From assembly GCF_964204645.1 (NCBI RefSeq), contig NC_134036.1, positions 1,178,001-1,242,000 on the forward strand: 64,000 nt of DNA, written 5' to 3'. Shown piece after piece: positions 13,031 to 44,580 of the stretch. This DNA comes from Tubulanus polymorphus (Eukaryota > Animalia > Nemertea). Every line of letters starts with the position of its first letter. The first letter of the stretch is position 1. The translations under genes and the position numbers were made by a program. The notes beneath the pieces were generated by a model that was not told where the DNA came from, ran no database searches, and saw only the letters and a program-made list of their open reading frames with translations.

Positions 13031-16000
13031 GGCAGAAATTGATACTCTTAAACTAAAACTCTGAATTATAATTCCTGCAACACAACTACAGAGGCTGCTA
13101 CAAATAACCCCATTGACAATTCTTATGACACTCAGTAAACTTTATGTTAACAGATAAACTGTCCTCTCATAATTGTTTTTGAAACTTAAATGAAATTCTA
13201 CTCACACAAGTCTCTTCTCCATTGTCTAGCAGTAATAAATGTCCACCGGGTTCCACAATTCCACATACAGAGTTCCACACCTACAGGAATCCACCACTGA
13301 CTTCTTTGATCCTTGTTGTTTTCTATCCAGATGCTCGATACCGACAGCAGTTTTACAGTTTTCAGTTGTTCGAACATATATTTTTCCAATCAGCAGCAAC
13401 TGACATAAAGTTCACAATAACTGAAGTCAAGTTCTCCCATTGTGTTCGTTTGTTTATCCTCTCAATGAGTAGATCCAGAGTTCTAACACTTTCCCACATA
13501 TCAAGTTGTCTTATCTAGTTCATCTGATGTAGTCCTAAGCAACAAACACACGTCATTACAATTTTCGTTTCTGATTCCTGAGATTTATCTTGCCGTTCCC
13601 GATATTATCATTGATGATGAGCATCCACTGCTGTTGCTGCGGAAAGTCCTATTCATAGCTGGATTCCACACTTGCAACAATTCCACTCGCATCCAGAAAC
13701 ATTCCACTCTCACAACCTAAGACTAAATCAAATAAAAGTACATTATCATGCAATCCACAAGAATCAATGAATGAAAGACGCTTTGATAGATTGCCGGATG
13801 ATGTAGAGATGGGAGGATGACATGGACGGGTGTTGGAGAATGGGATGAGAAAAGACGCATAGAAGAGATAATGATTTAAATGAATGGCCATTGCAAATAA
13901 GTGAGAGGATTGAGAAGTAAAGGAATTGTGAGAAGGCCTATGAGAGGAGGTCTATTTTGACATCGGTTTTTGCTAGTGTCAAGCACTTTTAGGTTTAATA
14001 CATAACAAATCGTATGATACCGTGTTTATATTGTGCACATATGCCATTGATAGCCACCGTTCTGTGCTAATGCACTTGACCGGTGCGCCATCTATAGAAA
14101 TATACAACTACCGGTCAAGCATTAAATGCTGTTTGGGTTCGAGTCCCATTTTCTCGTCTTTCTGTCCGGTTTTTAGGTGTCAGGAATAAGTAGTGATTTA
14201 ACCGAGGCCAGTTTAATAGGGGAGATACAAGTGCGGGGAGACAGACTAAGGGAAATTGAGACGATTTAAAGAATGGATGAAAAGCAGTGAGATACGAGGG
14301 AGAAGTGAGGGAGGAGAGAGGTAGAAGTAAGAGAGGGAGAGGGGAGTGAGAGGCGAGAGGGAGAAGTGGGGAGAGGGAGAGGGAAGTGAGAGGGAGGAGA
14401 GGTGAGAGGTAGAAGGGAAGTGAGTGGGGTGAGGGAGGAGAGGTGAGAGGAAGAAGTGGGGAGAGGGAGAGGGAAGTGAGAGGTAGAAGTGGGGAGAAGG
14501 AGAGGGAGAAAGGGAGAAGTGAGGAGAGGGAGAGAGAAAGAGGTGAGAAGAGAGAGGGAGAGGATGGCGGTATAATTAATTCATACGTTACCTCTGCTGC
14601 AGCCTCCAACATCTCTTTCTCCTGTTGTTTGTTGTGGTCCAAAACTCAAGCGGTTTCTTCCACTTTGAATGAAATCCATTCTTCTATAGGCTATATTGAA
14701 GTACCTCAGTTCGTCTGGCACTCCTCTAGCACCACCTGGATGGAATAAACAGAACAAATGCAGGATTAATAAAATATGAGACAAATGGCTGAATAATTAT
14801 TGGGTGGGGACCTTGTCGAATCTATCGGTTTACTCATGGACTTCTTTTTAGAATCGATGGTAGAATTCGAAGGCTAAGTGTGGTTACTGAATGTTTTCAA
14901 TTAGGACAATTTTAGTTATTTTAACGAATCCAAGCTCATAATTGTATGAACTGGATCCAGTTACCTCGATATTATTTACCTAGAGAAGCCTGTATGAACT
15001 GCGGGTTATGTGTAGCGCGTGAATAACCCAGAAGAACAGCAGCACCGAGACGAGCACCTTCATTTCCTGGCATTGATAAACACCATTCCAAATTTTCCAA
15101 GTCAATTTCACTTTCCCTATAAATGAAATCATCGATCACAAGAAATTAAACGAGATTTGTCGACAAATCAGTTTTATGCAGGTATATTTATCTAGATATT
15201 TAAATCTTGTCGAAAAACGACCGGAAAATGTTAAACGTGTAATTGCAAAATCGAGTTTTTACCTCATCAAAATATACCTGATTTTTTGGCATTGAAAATT
15301 AACCAAAAGATGAAATACAACCTACGCGGCACGGACAAGTCCGCTAGGCAAGATTCGTCGACAAATCAGCTTTTTCATACCAAAGTAATTATATGCATTA
15401 ATTTTCGGAGGGGCCAGTTGATCAAAAAATGGTTTAAGTTGACCAGTGGATAGTTGACATGGTGAATAATGAAAGTCCTTTGTTTCTATGGTATTCATTC
15501 ATTAGATATCTTTAACCAACGTTTGAACAACTGAAGCCCGTGAATGATGAAACATAAGATATACCTGCAATGTAGCGATAACAGATTTTCAACGTGTAGC
15601 AGGGTCCTTGATATGTATGGCACCGTCAGCTTCAGATCTTAAACGCCTTTCCGAATCTACCGAATTCACATTCCCTGCAAATATAATGATAGAATTTGAA
15701 ATGAAGCAGAATATTGCGATGTTTGATGGAAATATCAAAACGTCGACGCTTGGATTCGTCAAGATGACATTAGTTGATTTTTTCACTCTCCAACCGTTTT
15801 CATGGTACGTTGAGGGAATATAATTTTTTTTCAAATATTTACGAAAGAGAGTAGAAGGCTTTCGAAAGAATAATAAGGATGGGTTTGCAATTCCTGTGAA
15901 AGCAAACGGTCCCTACGCAACGGGAGCTTTTCTAAGGTGAATTGTTTCGGGAGAGTTCTCCACGTGAGTATTTCAGGTAGGGTTGTCGTGGAAAGGGAAG

Positions 16001-34044: not shown

Positions 34045-37000
34045 TCACTTCCATACTTCATATAGACAGTAACTGAATCACAGCTGGTTAAGGAACACAA
34101 TGTTGAAGTTATCGAGAATGAGAAGGTCGTTATTAGTAACTAATCATAATTTTACTGAATCGTTGAAGTTATCGAGAATGAGAAGGTCGTTATTAGTAAC
34201 TAATCATAATTTTACTGAATCGTTAAAGTTATCGAAAATGAGAAGGTCGACATTAGTAACTAATCATAATTTTACTGAATCGTTGAAGTTATCGAGAATG
34301 AGAAGGTCATCATAAGTAACTAATCGCAACTTGTATCGTTGAAGTCATTGATGACGAGAAAGTCGTCATTAGTTTGATCTTACCGAAGCTGGAACAGCCT
34401 ATAAAATGCGGCTGTGTATTGTATATAAAGGATACGTTTCATGGAACGATGGAACATGCCGAGCCCTCATTTCAAATTTAGCGCCTAAAGTTTTGATGTC
34501 ATTCTCGAATTGTGTTCGATAGTCGAGTCCACTCCAGCAGTTTCCCTGCGCGGATAGAAACAAAAACATATATATCATAGACTAACGTGCAGAGTGGATA
34601 GATAAAGGGGCATAAATCCCCCTAATGACATATCACCAAACTTCAGAGATCCCCCATGACATAATCAAATTCAAGTGGTGATATAAACACTTTGTACAAA
34701 GATGGCTGTCTCCATAAATTCCCCTATGACATTATTAAATAATGACGTCATAGATGGTATCATCATTTTGATGTGGTGATACCTGCTGAAAAGAAGTGCC
34801 TGTCCCATTAGTCCCCTCTACGACACCATCAAATAGAAATGGTACAGATATAGGCCTAGACCCCAAAATATAATGACTATTCTCCTAAATCTCCCTAATG
34901 ACAATAATCAACCTGATACTTCCAGAAAGAATGGTTGCCTCCATTAATCCCCCTATGACATCATGAAAGAAAACCTTCCTAGAGTGGATAGATAGACTGG
35001 CATAAATCCCCCTAATGACTCCATAGATCCCTCTTTGACATCATCAAATTCAAGTGGTGATACAAACACTTGTACTAAGATGGCTGCCTTGATAAATCCC
35101 ACTCTGACATCATCAAATGACTTCATAGATCCCAAAAGATGGCCACTACCACGAATTCCCCTATGACATCATGAAAGAAAACCTTTCCTATATTCTGTAC
35201 TTACTCTGGCTAGATATTTTCCGTTTGGTTTCAGCACATTCAACGACAATTCCAGAATCATACTGCAAGACTGGAAATCATAGTTGTAACCTGAAAATAG
35301 AGGAGGAAAATCCAACGACCGTTAGATTTGAAATTTAACCGTTAGATTTCAAATTTTCATACTTCCTTATATGGAGAAACTGAGGAATTCTCCCGACTTA
35401 CCTTGATTCGCCTTGTCGACCGGAAATTCAGTCAGATCGTTCACTACGAAATCAAAATGGATGCCTTTCGATTTGTAATGTATCAACTTCTTTATGCAAT
35501 CGTCAATTATAATCTGAAACGAGAACAAAAAACGATCAGTGACGATCAAATTCCGACATACGTCATGCTAGACAGCCTACGTCCAGAGGAACTAGCTCAG
35601 ATGGTAGAGCGCTCGCTTTGCATGCGAGAGGTACCGGGATCGATGCCCGGGTTCTCCAAGGTATTCTTTTTTGTCAAACCCGACATTAATGAGGACGACA
35701 CGCCAAGACGAGACCGTTTAGAAACATGACAGGGGAACTAGCGCAGATGGTAGAGCGCTCGCTTAGCATGCGAGAGGTACCGAGATCGCTGCCCGGGTTT
35801 CTTTTTGGTCAAACTTTATTTGTTACCCCTGACCTTTCTTTTATTTATCTATCTGTGTTCTTAGGGTGTGGACGAACAATGTTTGACTGAATCATGGCGA
35901 ACATGACGGATTGATATCTTTTTCGATCATATTTACGTACCTCGTGATTTTTTCCTTTAAACTCATCCATCGTATCTCCACAAACACTGCGCATATGTTT
36001 ACGACAAGCTTTTATCACTTCTTCGTCAATCTGTACGAAAAAAAAAATCATCTAAATAGATTTTACACAGCATTAACGGACAGTTCATTTGCAACCACCA
36101 TTTTCAACTACTTTAATCTCTGGTTGCATTCAGGGGAAGAGATATGTCATGGCAGCAATGGTACCAGAACTGGAAGAGTGAGACATCTCTGGTTGCATTC
36201 AAGGGAAGAGATATGTCATGGCAGCAATGGAACCAGAACTGGAAGAGTGAGACATCTCTGGTTGCATTCAAGGGAAGAGATATGTTATGGCAGCAGAACT
36301 GGAGGAGCGAGACATCTCTGTTTGCATTCAAGGGAAGAGATATGTCATGGCAGCAATGCTGGCAGAACTGGAGGAGCCAGAAATCTCTGGTTACATTGAG
36401 GGATAAAGATATGTCATGGTGGTAGACCTGGAAGAGCGAGATGTGGTGCCAACTGAGAAAGGCATATCTATACCTCGACCATGGTGACCATTTTAACTTT
36501 CTCTTTCACAAGTTCATGTATGAGACCGCCATCACCGCCGCCGAGAATCAGCACTTCTTTTCCTTTGTAATCCTCCCTGCGTTCGGCTCCGATACCCAAC
36601 AACGTATCCATGTAAACTCGGTCGCTCTCACCGAACACTTAAATATAAATATAATTATTTATATTAATATCTGATTAATGCATATGTTTTATTGGCAAAT
36701 AAGGAATTGAAGAATTTTATTACAAAGATGGAATCTTCGTTTTTTCGTTGTAGGACATCCGGTGGTCTCCTTGTTGAGGTAAAGGACGCCCCCTGGTGAC
36801 GAGTTGAGATACTTGAAGAGATGTAGGATGCCCCTAGTGACGGGGATACTAATTAATACCCTCGTTGAGGTGTAGGACGCCCCCTAGTGATGGGGATACT
36901 CACTAATACCCTCGTTGAGGTGTAGGACGCCCCCTAGTGACGGGAATACTAACTAATATCCTCGTTGAGGTGTAGGACGCCCCCTAGTGACGGGAATACT

Positions 37001-39792
37001 TACTAACATCCTCGTCTAGATGCAAAACGTTGCCGAATTCTTTGCTGTGAAGGATTTTGATATTTTGCCATTTGGAGTCGGAATTGTGAACGAGTTTATC
37101 GTAGTCGAACTCGAGCAGACGTTCGTCGGACGACGCGTAATATCTCCACAGGTTATCACCTCGTAATACCGGGCAATACAGACTGTAATACAATAGCAGT
37201 ATCTCAAATCAATATCGGATATATCAATCTCATCGCGAACTAGTGAACGAGAGAAAATTAAATTTGATAATTCATTCGATGAATATCGATTTAAATCTCA
37301 TGTGTACAACAGTGAATCTCAGAAATAATTCGATAATTAAACTTACTTCTATTAAGATATACTAATCGAAAAAATAATGAATATTGATTGATATATTATT
37401 GATTGATTGATATAACAATGATTGACCTATATATTATTTATTGATCGATATAATATTGATTGATCGATATAAAATTGATTGATACTGATATTATTGATTA
37501 AATATATCAACAGTTTGTTAGAGCATAATATCGCTGCGTTAGTCGAGTGGCTCCCAAAATACCCTGCTACACGATATAGTCAATTAAACAAATCACATCA
37601 AACGATACATCAATTTGTGTGCATTTGGATGAATTAGTAGGAGGACGGTTTTCAGAAATATATATATAGAGAGAATTCAAAAAGATTAAAAAGCGAATTT
37701 TATTTATCAAGAATTAAGACAAAAAAAAATCTTTACGCCAAGCTCCTAGTGCAATGAACGATAAGACAATGAACCCATAAACCGTCAATTACCTGCTTAC
37801 TACGAGAATTACTAAAATAGCTTGTTCTCCCTTCGCACCTGACGACAATCTCTAGCGAGAGTTCGAAACCACGTGTGCATCTTTATATCAATTCTTGATA
37901 AATAAAATTCCAATATCTAATTTTTCTAAATTCTGTATGTAGTTGCGGGTAATATGATTATCCGTAGCCTTCACGTTCCGGGGGTACGGGTGGCTATTTT
38001 AGCATAGCGAATTGAATGAAATAGATGTTGTACCTGCGACTGCTAACGCACAATGAACCGAGATGACTTTTCAATTTGTCTTCGATTGTTCGAGCACACT
38101 GCGCATGCGTGGACAATATGTGGAAATAATGAAAAAAAGATTTTTTGAAAAGAGAGAATAAGAAAAGAAGAAAAACATGCTTTAGTATTTTTAAACGTGA
38201 GTGACAAAATATCATAAGGCGGCCATCTTGGATCAGCAGACACCGGCGAAAATATCCGAGCATCAAAATCCAAGATGGCCGCCTCTGATATTTGAAATGC
38301 GTAAATTTAGAAGCGACATTTCGTCACTTTCCAAACGGCTTTGTAAGCTATATGGCTAAATATATAACGTAATTGATGAGCTTTTCGACTCAATTTTCGA
38401 CTCAATAATCTACGAGTCATTTACAAAACCTCCTCTACTTTCTTTCAATGCACCCCTGTCTAAAATACCCAGTGCACAGAGTCTAGTCCTCGTTTTCAGA
38501 CAACCTATCTTCAGCCCTATTTCGCGCGAAAAAATGTAAACTGATATTTTATAGGTTTGAATTAATAACCTTTGGTTGCTTCCAATTCGGGCCACGCTAG
38601 AAAACAATTCCGTCGGCTAGAGACAAGACATGTTTTGTGTCCTCGCGCGAGATAACTAAAAATGGGCCATTTTAAATTTTCACTCTTTATGTAAAAAGTA
38701 TTTTATCTTGCCTCTACGCTTTAAGAAAAATGTTTTACTATGGCCCAAATCAGCGACTTTATGATGATGATTTCAATGTGGCCAACTATTCAAACTCAAC
38801 CGTTTTTTTTAAATCTTGAAATAGGGATTGTCCCTGTTATCTATTTGGTTGGTAAATTTCATTTGATTTTCATTCATAGAGTGTCCCTTACAAACACCCA
38901 CCAAACCATTTTTAAGCGTTAAGCTTTTCCGAAAAACTATTCGACCCTGACCTCCACGAACAAAAGGCTCTATATTCCGACCATCTGTAGTGTGGGGGCG
39001 CTGTTAGATACAAAACCGCGCGTTAATTGGTTAGCTGGAACGTATGAATAAACATAACATATGCCAATCAAACATTGAATGGGGCGTGGCTTATTTAGCG
39101 TTCAAACTTTTTAAAACAATCTATCAAAATGTAGAAAACAATCATGAAATGTAATTAGAAAAACCGCGGTGCTTCAGTGGTTTGTATCAGAGTTTATAGG
39201 TGCTTGGGGACGACAAGCACTGTCCCTGGCATGCGACCATACACCGGATGTAACTAACAACTGACCCTTGCGTCTCGACTAGGTCGTCGCCCATTTTCGC
39301 GTTCATTTTGTGACGCATTTCTAAAGAAGTCTGAAAATTTCGGAATGAATTTCTGAGTTATCATGATATCTTCCAACGTTACCACCGTCGCCACCGCTGC
39401 CGCCGCCGCCGCTGCCGCCCTACAGCGCCTGCGTGTCGTCACGAATCCCTCGTATGACGTCATCGGAATGCAATAAACAATACCGTATCTGATATATCCG
39501 ATGACGTCATAGGTGGATTCGTGAAGATTAGCATGGTTTTTACATTTGAATGTGTGAGTCAAGGGCCGTGCCGCGAGTTTAGTTTTTGAGGGGTGGTTCT
39601 ATGCCAAGGGAAAGCTGCACTTTTTCACCGTGAAAATGGGCCAAAAATAAACCAAGAAATTGCATCCAAATTCGTTCGAAAAATCTTGACTCGATTTTTC
39701 GTTTTATACTGAGTTTTTGAAGGACACCCGAACCCTCCTCGGCACGGGCCTGTGAATGATGATAATGATAATGACGCCCTGGCATGCTAATG

Positions 39793-39838
<46 letters not shown>

Positions 39839-42800
39839 GGATGAAGACGCGCATGCTGATGAACCGGAGTTGATCCGGAAACTGACCCGTGTACTGCCGT
39901 TAACTCGTTGCTCAGCATAGCCTGCATGGCGTGTTGCGTTTCGTAAAGCATCTGAAACATGCCAGAAAATCTTAGAAAAAACCCCGATCCTTTACGGAGC
40001 CCCGCAATAGCTGATGACACGGTGAAAAAAGGTTTTTTTCTTTACTTGGGAACGAAAAGTTTTCATGGGAACAAATTAGGAAAAGATTTCGTTCCCGGAT
40101 TAAACTTTCGTTTGTTCCCACGTGGTTCTGTGGGCCAACCTACGTCGGAATTGCGTGGGCCACAATGCGCCGGAGTTGCGTGGGCCACAATGCGCCGTGG
40201 TTGCGTGGGCCACAATGCACCGTGGTAGCGTGGGCCACAATGCGCCGGAATTGCGTGGGCCACAATGCGCCGGAGTTGCGTGGGCCACAATGCGCCGTGG
40301 TTGCGTGGGCCACAATGCACCGTGGTAGCGTGGGCCACAATGCGCCGGAATTGCGTGGGCCACAATGCGCCGGAGTTGCGTGGGCCACAATGCGCCGGAA
40401 TTGCGTGGGCCACAATGCGCCGTAGTTGCGTGGGCCACAATCCCGTTTTAGTTGCGTGTGCCCAATCCCGTCGTAGTTTTCTACACCGACAAAGCGATGC
40501 CCAAAAGTTGCCCAATGACGTAATTCTCAATAGTTTTATCGAAGTTGTTTTTTCCTGCCGTTCATACTCACATTCAAAGCGTATTTTTGTACAAACTCTT
40601 CTTTATCTTCCATGTGGACGATGGCGTCTAAGGTCACGTGGTTACCATCGTTAAATGTTCGAATATTACAGCTCCTAAAAAATGCGACAAAAAAAAACTA
40701 TTGAACATTTTTAGAATCCTGTAAACTTTGACATTCTGTTTCATTTTGCTGACATGTAATTTTCGCTAACTTTTACTGACATGTAATTTTCGCAAACTTT
40801 AACTGACATGTTATTTTCGCTAACATTTTACTGACATGTTATTTTCGCAAACTTTAACTGACATGTTATTTTCGCTAACTTTTTACTGACATGTTATTTT
40901 CGCAAACTTTTAACTGACATGTTATTTTCGCAAACTTTAACTGACATGTTATTTTCGCTAACTTTTTACTGACCTGTTATTTTCGCTAACTTTTTACTGA
41001 CATGTAATTTTCGCTTACTTTTACTGACATGTAATTTTCGCTAACTTTTACTGACATTTATTTTCGCAAACTTTAACTGACATGTTATTTTCGCAAACTG
41101 TTTACTGACATGTTATTTTCGCTAACTTTTTACTGACATGTTATTTTCGCAAACTTTAACTGATATGTTATTTTCGCTAACTTTTTACTGACCTGTTATT
41201 TTCGCTAACTTTTTACTGACATGTTATTTTCGTAAACTTGTAAAAAATGTTATTTTCACTGGTATTCGCCTTTAATGACGCGTTTGCCATTTTACTGATA
41301 CGTTATTTTCGCCGATGTTTCTAATTTCTACTCACATGTTATTCTCGCCGATAGCCACGTAGAGTCTATCTCCGTTGGGAATGTCGTGCGAAGCCTTCGA
41401 AACGATTGGTCCGATTGTAAACTCTGCCAATTCGTACAGTTTCTTTTCACATTCTGCGATTTAAAAAAATCAAAAAAAAAAAAATCATTTTTTAAGAAAA
41501 CGAAATGATCTCGACTACATCCATTATTAAAAACCCATATGACATCACAATATTGACAATTCCAGAAAGATGGCCGCCTGCGTACATCCCCTTATGACGT
41601 CATGGCGTTAATGATGTGGTGACACATACCCTTACCTATATATCACCCTATGACATCATCAAATTGACACGGTAGACATTTCAGAGAAAATGGCTGCCCC
41701 TGCATGTCCCCCTATGACGTCATGCAATTAGTGATGAGGTGACTCCCACGACAACACTTCCTCTAATGGCGCAATATGTCAGCAAAATGATTTATGATAA
41801 TTAATGATAATTTAGCTGGGTAGGGTGTGAAAGCCGGTCAGTAGTAGGGTAGTACTACGAATTCATACAACGAATAAGTTGAATTCAAAACCGCGGGAGA
41901 GGATTTGGAATTATTCCGAAAACCGCGGGAGCGGATTAACGATTATTCTGAACCACGAACGTGTCGAATTAAACAGAACAAGTGACACTTTGAATCTGTT
42001 AGAATAACCCCCCCCGTACAATTGAATATAGATGGCGCTGTTAGAACAGCCCCCCGTACAATCTGACGTGTGCACAACAGATAAATCATACAAAATATAG
42101 GATCCTTTTGAATATAGATGGCGCTGTTAGAACAGCCCCCCGTACAATCTGACGCGTGGACAAAAAAACTAATTTTATTTCTTAAGAATTAGAATTAAAA
42201 ACCACGACGTTTCGCACTCTCACGAGAGGTCAGCGACACCTGGCGATGATCATCGAAAATAGAAAAAAAGGTTGACTTTAATCATTCAATACATTGCTTG
42301 AAAACGGATTCGGATTCTACTTGAATAGCAGCACCATTCATTCACAAATCAGACATCAATTAAAATATCATTATCTTATCCGAGCCCTGCTTTACTAGGT
42401 GGTAAACGGAGGTTAAAAAATCAATACGATTAAATATCGATTACCATTCGAATCCGTATGAATTTGATTTTTGAATTTTTGAACCGATGATATTTCTAAA
42501 AATCATATGTTGGCTCCCGTTCGTCCATAGATCTACATTGATTTATTCCTTTGAGGTTTTTAAAGCCTGTTTTTTTGTAGTTGTTGTTAAACCCACGACA
42601 CTATTTTACATAAATGAATGAATTAAAAAAAGCTGAAGTCACGAAAATCTAGATCGTTTGTATTCACGAAAAAAAAACGCGCACCGGGGATTTGCATGCT
42701 AAACAAGCACCTGTCCACCTGCTCGACAACAGCACGTGTATCATAATCGTCTTATTAAAATATCACGTAGAAGTTATTTTTTTTTTTTGAAAACGTATGG

Positions 42801-44493: not shown

Positions 44494-44580
44494 CTTACCC
44501 GGAGAAGAAAGAAATCCCGGCACCACTTTGAAGTAATACATCAGAGTACGGGTAGTCGTCGGTACTGCGGTCGTTGCCAT
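34045..44580 (-). CDS. SMS: Spermine synthase, 378 aa, 11 exon positions with three alternative versions of exon 4
   Basis: Exons 44580-44499, 41453-41336, 40674-40572, [39951-39887 | 39330-39266 | 38098-38034], 37182-37004, 36637-36474, 36030-35941, 35513-35402, 35290-35205, 34545-34436 and 34072-34045 give 1137 nt in frame. Motifs [46 protein letters not shown] and VPSFHE are diagnostic of spermine synthase with its N-terminal extension. Confidence 0.96.
34101..34330. repeat. 60-bp minisatellite, about 4 copies (SMS intron 10)
   Basis: Unit gttgaagttatcgagaatgagaaggtcgttattagtaactaatcataattttactgaatc. Related diverged sequence at about 61840-62040. Confidence 0.9.
35586..35658 (+). tRNA. 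tRNA-Ala(TGC), one acceptor-stem mismatch (A2:C71)
   Basis: 73-nt cloverleaf GAGGAACTAGCTCAG...CTCGC-TT-TGC-AT-GCGAG...GGGATCGATGCCC...GTTCTCCA with the G3:U70 alanine determinant and a downstream T-run. Antisense within SMS intron 7. Confidence 0.85.
35732..35802 (+). pseudogene. tRNA-Ala(AGC) pseudogene
   Basis: Same body as the other copies but with substitutions in the D stem and T arm and a degraded 3' acceptor strand. Confidence 0.8.
36115..36410. repeat. 69-bp minisatellite, about 4.5 copies (SMS intron 6)
   Basis: Unit atctctggttgcattcaagggaagagatatgtcatggcagcaatggaaccagaactggaagagtgagac. Confidence 0.9.
36770..37015. repeat. 50-bp tandem repeat derived from the SMS exon 5 / intron 5 junction
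   Basis: ctcgttgagg recurs at 36861, 36911 and 36961. The unit copies the exon 3' end and the donor site. Confidence 0.85.
38034..38098 (-). CDS. SMS: SMS alternative exon 4c ([22 protein letters not shown])
   Basis: 65 nt, gcgcag acceptor, AG|GTACAA donor, phase 0 to 2, open frame. Confidence 0.8.
39266..39330 (-). CDS. SMS: SMS alternative exon 4b ([22 protein letters not shown])
   Basis: 65 nt, ttttcag acceptor, GG|GTCAGT donor, phase 0 to 2, open frame, homologous to 4a. Confidence 0.8.
39790..39843. repeat. (GAT)n microsatellite, read as (UCA)n in the SMS pre-mRNA
   Basis: About 15 GAT units, roughly 45-95 nt downstream of exon 4a in transcript orientation. Confidence 0.95.
39887..39951 (-). 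CDS. SMS: SMS alternative exon 4a ([22 protein letters not shown])
   Basis: 65 nt, tttcag acceptor, GG|GTCAGT donor, phase 0 to 2, open frame. Confidence 0.8.
40128..40465. repeat. 25-bp GC-rich minisatellite, about 13 copies (SMS intron 3)
   Basis: Unit gcgtgggccacaatgcgccggagtt. Explains the multiple overlapping ORFs at 40063-40654. Confidence 0.95.
40745..41345. repeat. 27-28-bp tandem repeat (about 18-20 copies) derived from the SMS exon 2 donor junction
   Basis: Unit ctgacatgttattttcgctaactttta versus the true junction ctcacatgttattctcgccgatagc at 41331. Confidence 0.9.

Follow-up and report, generated by a model that had tools for sequence, protein, structure and literature searches.

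Tandem-duplicated exons of which one at a time is used are known from FGFR2, where the exclusivity of exons IIIb and IIIc is secured by the reading frame and mRNA decay, and from a metabolic enzyme, pyruvate kinase, where PKM exons 9 and 10 are tandem and exclusive. Here we analyse a cluster of this kind in the gene for spermine synthase (SMS), defects of which cause Snyder-Robinson syndrome. The gene lies on the minus strand of a 64,000-nucleotide (nt) stretch of the genome of the nemertean Tubulanus polymorphus (NCBI RefSeq assembly GCF_964204645.1, contig NC_134036.1, positions 1,178,001 to 1,242,000), hereafter called the window, whose numbering is used for all coordinates unless another locus is named. 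The cluster, which comprises three versions of exon 4, is real: two versions are already annotated, and the third, exon 4b, is intact but unproven.

The nearest counterpart is found in the annotation of insect SMS. Equal-length pairs of isoforms that differ in one block are present in Cotesia, Microplitis, Glossina, Drosophila, Anopheles, Topomyia, and Uranotaenia, and an either-or X1/X2 pair also occurs in Aedes; the variant types are conserved between flies and wasps. In Glossina fuscipes, the sole insect locus examined for exon layout, two exons of 111 nt (locus L006, 8144-8254) and 108 nt (approximately 14448-14555 of the same locus) lie in tandem, 6 kb apart, in one 24-kb intron. The existence of two SMS isoforms in Drosophila has been mentioned, with no comment on their nature (PMC5668419), and the either-or pair of Diptera and Hymenoptera seems to be undescribed in papers. 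In the literature, we found no paper that reports mutually exclusive exons of this sort for spermine synthase, and none describing the isoforms of T. polymorphus.

Results

Three versions of exon 4 in one intron

The protein cluster of T. polymorphus spermine synthase has two members of 378 residues each, isoforms X1 and X2 (XP_074661471.1 and XP_074661472.1), whose sole difference is the block of residues 102-123. When the two proteins were aligned to the window by tblastn, this block was found to be encoded by exon 4c (38034..38098) in isoform X1 and by exon 4a (39887..39951, 100% identity over residues 102-123) in isoform X2. A third copy, exon 4b (39266..39330), is an unannotated candidate recognised by its similarity to 4a, its second rank in a profile of exon 4, and splice sites like those of 4a. 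The three copies adjoin on the same minus strand within one intron of 3389 nt, which separates the constitutive exon 3 (40572..40674, 100% identity by tblastn) from the constitutive exon 5 (37004..37182, likewise 100%), the latter accepting phase 2.

A first-pass annotation made from the sequence alone had described three minus-strand units at these positions, and its description is accurate: each unit is 65 nt long and open, preceded by AG and followed by GT, and runs from phase 0 to phase 2, and the residues that it listed as common to 4a, 4b, and 4c are all correct. The borders that it gave to the flanking exons (exon 3 ending at 40572, exon 5 starting at 37182) were borne out both by tblastn of the RefSeq protein and by spliced transcript contigs. 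The junction codon, made of the last two bases of exon 4 and the first T of exon 5, encodes Gly after 4a or 4b and Ser after 4c.

The RefSeq annotation thus already makes public that 4a and 4c are used as alternatives; it assigns both versions to the same gene but has no product with 4b and does not name the exons mutually exclusive. NCBI Gnomon makes alternative isoforms only from transcript evidence. For this genome the analysis adds a candidate exon missing from the annotation, 4b, and clearly identifies the default one, 4c; the practical gain is small. The earlier suggestion that such a cassette had no precedent in a polyamine synthase does not hold, since the 4a/4c swap was already in RefSeq and the annotations of Diptera and Hymenoptera have a conserved either-or exon for this helix.

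Exon 4c is the version found in spliced contigs

Of the four read sets considered, none is recorded as RNA, and run X4 gave nothing at the locus. Run X1 has an even depth of about 35 over the stretch and behaves as DNA, whereas run X2 was taken as RNA from its coverage, with an exon depth of 700-1500 and a depth of zero over some intron parts. The data of run X2 are assembled contigs, which drop rare variants. One contig covers exon 3 (40572-40674) and joins it to 4c through the junction 40572>38098 at a depth of 711, and a second junction, 38034>37182, joins 4c to exon 5 at a depth of 1152, giving the chain exon 3-4c-exon 5; the exon 5 contig continues into exon 6. Exon 4c is therefore the dominant version and the default choice.

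Two minor features accompany these junctions. A contig spanning 37793-38063 passes the 4c donor and splices 37793>37182, thereby extending 4c by 37793..38033 to a cryptic donor (CAG|GTAATT) and breaking the frame, at a depth of 10 as against 1152 for the regular junction. An unspliced contig of 1751 nt and a depth of 100 covers 38069-39781, starting inside 4c and running through 4b to an ATG microsatellite, and the parts of the intron beside it (37202-37705 and 39848-40477) have a depth of zero in run X2. This contig could reflect slow removal of an intron segment, transcription starting inside the gene, or a transcript unrelated to SMS.

The copies are homologous, as judged from register, nucleotide identity, and splice signals

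The geometry of the three units is weak evidence when taken alone. The intron contains six open 65-nt units bounded by AG and GT and running from phase 0 to phase 2, where 2.5 are expected from dinucleotide shuffles, and at least three such units occur in 44% of the shuffles, so that their presence is not beyond chance.

Comparison of the copies is more telling. Exons 4a and 4b are identical at 34 of 65 nt, where all 65-nt windows of the intron give a background of 16.1 ± 3.5 (z 5.1), and they are mutual best matches lying exactly in register. In the flanks, identity is down to 13-30% by about 10 nt on the upstream side and about 45 nt on the downstream side. The acceptor TTTCAG|A and the donor GG|GTCAGT are identical in the two exons, and matches are slightly commoner at the first and second codon positions (13/22 and 12/22) than at the third (9/21). 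The other three 65-nt AG..GT units of the intron showed no similarity of this kind.

A profile of exon 4 was built from an alignment of ten other lophotrochozoans and scanned over the 2446 stop-free windows of 21 residues in the intron, on both strands. The top-ranking window was that of 4c (z 6.5); 4b took second place (z 3.65) and 4a seventh (z 3.0), and in each case the match began at the AG-bounded start of the exon. Pairwise peptide scores gave z values of 4.7 for 4a-4b, 3.6 for 4b-4c, and 1.5 for 4a-4c, the last not significant, so that 4a and 4c are linked via 4b. Exon 4c can also be aligned with its counterpart in Lineus, Owenia, Lingula, and molluscs. The nucleotide identity and the profile ranks together uphold the earlier claim that the units are homologous tandem copies of SMS exon 4, and the profile and pairwise scores indicate an order in which 4c is the ancestral copy, 4b intermediate, and 4a the most diverged.

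The reading frame admits one copy

Since each copy measures 65 nt, any copy number other than one shifts the frame. In agreement with the one-at-a-time use proposed in the first-pass annotation, inclusion of zero, two, or three copies leads to a first stop at codon 42 to 64 of the reading from exon 3 onward, whereas any single copy leaves the frame open through exon 6. Such out-of-frame transcripts would presumably be removed by nonsense-mediated decay, and exclusivity may be enforced in this way. Steric exclusion is unlikely, because the copies are separated by introns of 556 and 1167 nt with ordinary GT-AG splice sites. No junction joining 4a or 4b to 4c was seen in run X2, whose contigs may miss co-inclusion.

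A GCATG motif accompanies each copy

The motif (U)GCAUG, when bound by Rbfox, activates an exon from a downstream position and represses it from an upstream one. The intron contains six GCATG motifs against 2.7 expected. None is further than 100 nt from the nearest of the three exons, and sequence this close to them accounts for 24% of the intron (binomial p 2e-4). One is located 31 nt downstream of the 4a donor (39852..39856) and another at almost the same distance, 32 nt, from the 4b donor (39230..39234), both on the minus strand like the two that precede 4c, 10 nt (38104..38108) and 82 nt (38176-38180) upstream of its acceptor; the remaining two are at +100 and -11 of 4a. Under the positional rule, a Rbfox-type factor may steer the choice of copy, the downstream motifs activating 4a and 4b and the motif just upstream of 4c repressing it, so that cells with such a factor may favour 4a or 4b over 4c.

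Pairing of docking and selector sequences, as in Dscam, is not apparent: an inverted-repeat scan of the intron returned isolated pairs only (such as 38124-38146 with 40025-40047) and no arm common to the three variants. Two other such pairs were returned. A stretch of the intron between 4a and 4b (39490-39502) is perfectly complementary over 13 nt to 37214-37226, located 32-44 nt upstream of exon 5, where about 0.1 such matches are expected by chance, and pairing of the two would loop out 4b and 4c. The 22 nt at 39545-39566, also between 4a and 4b, are 77% complementary to the donor region of exon 3 (40557-40578), and their pairing would loop out 4a or mask that donor.

The swapped block is a helix and a strand of the N-terminal domain

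AlphaFold models of isoforms X1 and X2 were obtained with a 35-sequence alignment whose rows are all 4c-like, and the model of the 4a version is accordingly not independent. Mean pLDDT is 90.8 for isoform X1 and 91.6 for isoform X2, with values over the swapped block of 92-98 (4c) and 85-93 (4a). In both models the block forms a helix (residues 102-117 in X1, 100-113 in X2) followed by a strand (118-123), in line with the earlier proposal that exon 4 encodes a helix of the N-terminal domain (N-domain). Positions 9, 13, and 17 are hydrophobic in all three versions, while the net charge changes from +2 in 4c to -1 in 4b and -2 in 4a, and Cys is exchanged for Met. Searches of solved structures with the three 21-residue exon 4 peptides and with exon 3 gave nothing useful.

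The swap would therefore, as modelled, replace the helix of residues 102-117 and the strand of residues 118-123 at the place where the N-terminal domain meets the central domain. The N-domain of SMS is required for dimerisation and activity (PMC4730321), and the first-pass annotation had proposed that the cassette might tune dimerisation, partners, or stability. An effect on dimerisation is not supported here; the dimer interface is placed on the beta sheets of the two N-domains rather than on the exon 4 helix (PMC4207787). As the helix probably lies on the outer face, a direct effect on dimer contact is not the most likely outcome.

Gene identity and the remaining exons

The gene was identified by comparing exon 5 with protein representatives, which led to nemertean and brachiopod spermine synthase-like proteins; the same exon matches the human SMS structure 3C6K with 56.9 bits. 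The gene of the window corresponds to the RefSeq spermine synthase-like gene of T. polymorphus, with 100% identity in the exons cleanly resolved by tblastn. Precomputed Pfam matches on isoform X1 include both the N-domain PF17284 and PF01564, and the GGGDGG motif and other invariant columns are retained in the alignment. Judged by the two Pfam domains and the resemblance to human SMS, the gene is a predicted member of the spermine synthase family, and it is single-copy, with no second copy in the T. polymorphus genome.

All remaining coding exons are on the minus strand. Coding exon 1 (residues 1-27) lies at 44500..44580 with 100% identity by tblastn, exon 2 (residues 28-67) was placed by tblastn at 41336..41454, its low end being approximate, and exon 6, which carries the GGGDGG motif, lies at 36471..36637, also with an approximate low end; its position comes from tblastn, and a loose contig end at 37004 fits its start. 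The human splice mutation c.329+5G>A fits an exon end in phase 2, as in Tubulanus exon 4, and agrees with the claim that human exon 4 shares this phase (PMC6318755). No convincing open reading frame of another gene was found inside the intron between exons 3 and 5, and Rfam searches yielded nothing beyond sub-threshold matches, all on the microsatellite.

Several repeats surround the exons. An (ATG)18 microsatellite (39790-39844) begins about 40 nt downstream of 4a; assembly contigs break there, and translation continuing from 4a into it would yield a stretch of His. Upstream of 4b there is an inverted repeat of 20 nt with 90% complementarity (39448-39467/39497-39516) and the CRE-like palindrome TGACGTCA in each arm. 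Upstream of 4c, at a distance of 120-185 nt, two perfectly complementary 17-nt arms of an inverted repeat enclose a loop of 34 nt (38217-38233/38268-38284), and both arms bear a AAGATGGCC-type motif resembling a YY1 site or a core-promoter element. Between 4b and 4c, a short high-copy repeat (38801-38870) stands at a depth of about 10,000 in run X1, the DNA run, where the surrounding sequence has about 35. Two tandem arrays occupy SMS introns at 40146-40441 (25-nt unit, 11.8 copies, with a GTGGCCCAC palindrome core) and 40744-41257 (28-nt unit, 18.8 copies).

SMS genes of other lophotrochozoans

The orthologue of another nemertean, Lineus longissimus, encodes SMS-like isoforms X1 and X2 that, as in Tubulanus, arise by alternative splicing in the same intron. 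The event is a different one: their sole difference is an optional cassette of 72 nt (locus L001, 3726-3797) located before exon 4, which encodes 24 residues including a Cys-Cys pair. Unlike Tubulanus, Lineus has a single exon 4, of 68 nt, with no copies. The annotated SMS of Owenia, Lingula, and molluscs has 4c-like sequence, and its isoforms differ elsewhere. Among relatives of at most about 48% identity, the triplication thus seems to be confined to the Tubulanus lineage.

Discussion

Our analysis indicates that the three units are most likely a cluster of mutually exclusive exons, which arose in the Tubulanus lineage when the ancient 65-nt exon 4 of SMS was duplicated in tandem. In the scenario that we propose, splicing defaults to 4c, the ancestral copy; 4a has diverged and serves a minor isoform that is already annotated, and 4b is an intermediate copy that has kept the frame, both splice sites, and the downstream GCATG.

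A number of observations weigh against this scenario. A tandem repeat in the Lineus intron, which has no splice sites, scores 24 against 4b, equal to the score of 4a, and peptide scores of such size can thus occur by chance in about 1000 windows. Peptide scores alone are consequently insufficient, and the case for homology comes from the exact register, the nucleotide identity, and the common splice signals. The intron motif is always GCATG, none of the six occurrences being the full TGCATG, and the one at -11 of 4a is upstream of that exon. The pyrimidine tract of 4b is the weakest of the three. The nearest proteins in the collection are about 48% identical, too distant for the conservation of 4a and 4b to be gauged. 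Finally, the run X2 contigs, from which rare variants drop out, include no junction to 4a or to 4b. As the annotated 4a likewise has no junction, the missing 4b junction is not evidence of absence.

The status of 4b is where the explanations part. The first-pass annotation had predicted three isoforms, a prediction that stands for 4a and 4c, which RefSeq isoforms X2 and X1 show to be alternative, but is unproven for 4b, which no annotated product includes and to which no run X2 contig splices. It is quite conceivable, at slightly less than an even chance, that 4b is a genuine third alternative, used sparingly or confined to certain cells or stages; failing that, it would be a relic. That the 65 nt, the acceptor, the donor, and the GCATG at +32 (+31 in 4a) have been kept while the flanks were randomised favours a maintained exon, and so does the fact that the exon 4 profile of other species is matched better by 4b than by 4a, the annotated version. 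The cluster may instead be a two-way one, in which 4b is a duplication relic that is no longer spliced in and whose intact frame and splice sites are left over, a reading that we hold to be plausible, if somewhat short of even. The missing product and junction are what such a relic would give, and 4b sits inside the unspliced contig and has the weakest pyrimidine tract; moreover, a frame of 21 codons stays open by luck about one time in three. A copy that had died early would, however, have decayed like the flanks, to 13-30% identity, yet the exon, its splice signals, and its GCATG persist, and the relic would be nearer than a version in use to the exon 4 of other phyla.

Two other readings concern the origin and purpose of the extra copies. 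Unproductive splicing tunes the levels of other polyamine genes, and 4a and 4b could be poison exons whose joint inclusion with 4c puts the reading out of frame and exposes the mRNA to decay, thereby tuning the level of SMS. Every double or triple inclusion does lead to an early stop, and run X2 contains abundant unspliced RNA between 4a and 4c (depth 100) as well as the minor frame-breaking extension of 4c. We nevertheless regard this function as improbable, given that RefSeq isoform X2 has 4a alone and in frame, that 4a and 4b retain the helix pattern and the protein-level homology to exon 4, needless for a poison exon, and that the 4a-4c and 4b-4c junctions are missing from run X2. That 4b, or 4a and 4b, are random open AG..GT units unrelated to exon 4 draws on the frequency of such units, six in the intron where 2.5 are expected and at least three in 44% of shuffles. 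This last reading is close to refuted by the 4a-4b nucleotide match, 5 standard deviations over background and exactly in register, and by the profile scan, in which 4b came second of 2446 windows against an independent profile; in addition, 4a is present in a RefSeq protein, and the three remaining 65-nt units have no such similarity.

Tandem duplication of exon 4 giving either-or exons remains our preferred reading, and it is an ordinary kind of event, of which insect SMS shows another instance. The Tubulanus exons resemble FGFR2 IIIb/IIIc and PKM 9/10 in being homologous neighbours of equal length and phase that swap one structural element while the rest of the enzyme stays constant, and, as in systems of the FGFR2 type, a wrong copy number breaks the frame. 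They differ from both in that there are three copies and that no known allosteric or catalytic site coincides with the swapped element.

The comparison with insects is the closest, as the pair (Drosophila Sms RA/RB and its counterparts) concerns the same enzyme, the same upstream intron position, and the same N-domain helix. The insect block extends further, through the linker and the first strands, which belong to exon 5 in Tubulanus and human, and it exists in two copies as opposed to three; with exons of 108 and 111 nt, the frame does not enforce exclusivity, unlike the 65 nt of Tubulanus. No type-specific similarity of the insect versions to 4a, 4b, or 4c was found, and together with the different downstream exon border this makes an independent origin of the two clusters likely. 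The last helix of the N-domain would then be encoded by either-or exons both in insects and in a ribbon worm, through what look like separate events, which hints at a surface worth tuning in a domain whose one assigned role is dimerisation. A stronger proposition is that 4b is a real third isoform, used in certain cells or stages under a GCAUG-reading factor, and that the three-way cluster of the nemertean is independent of the old two-way cluster of insects; we consider this combination rather unlikely. If true, the outer N-terminal helix would be a recurrently tuned surface of SMS, serving perhaps partner binding, stability, or localisation.

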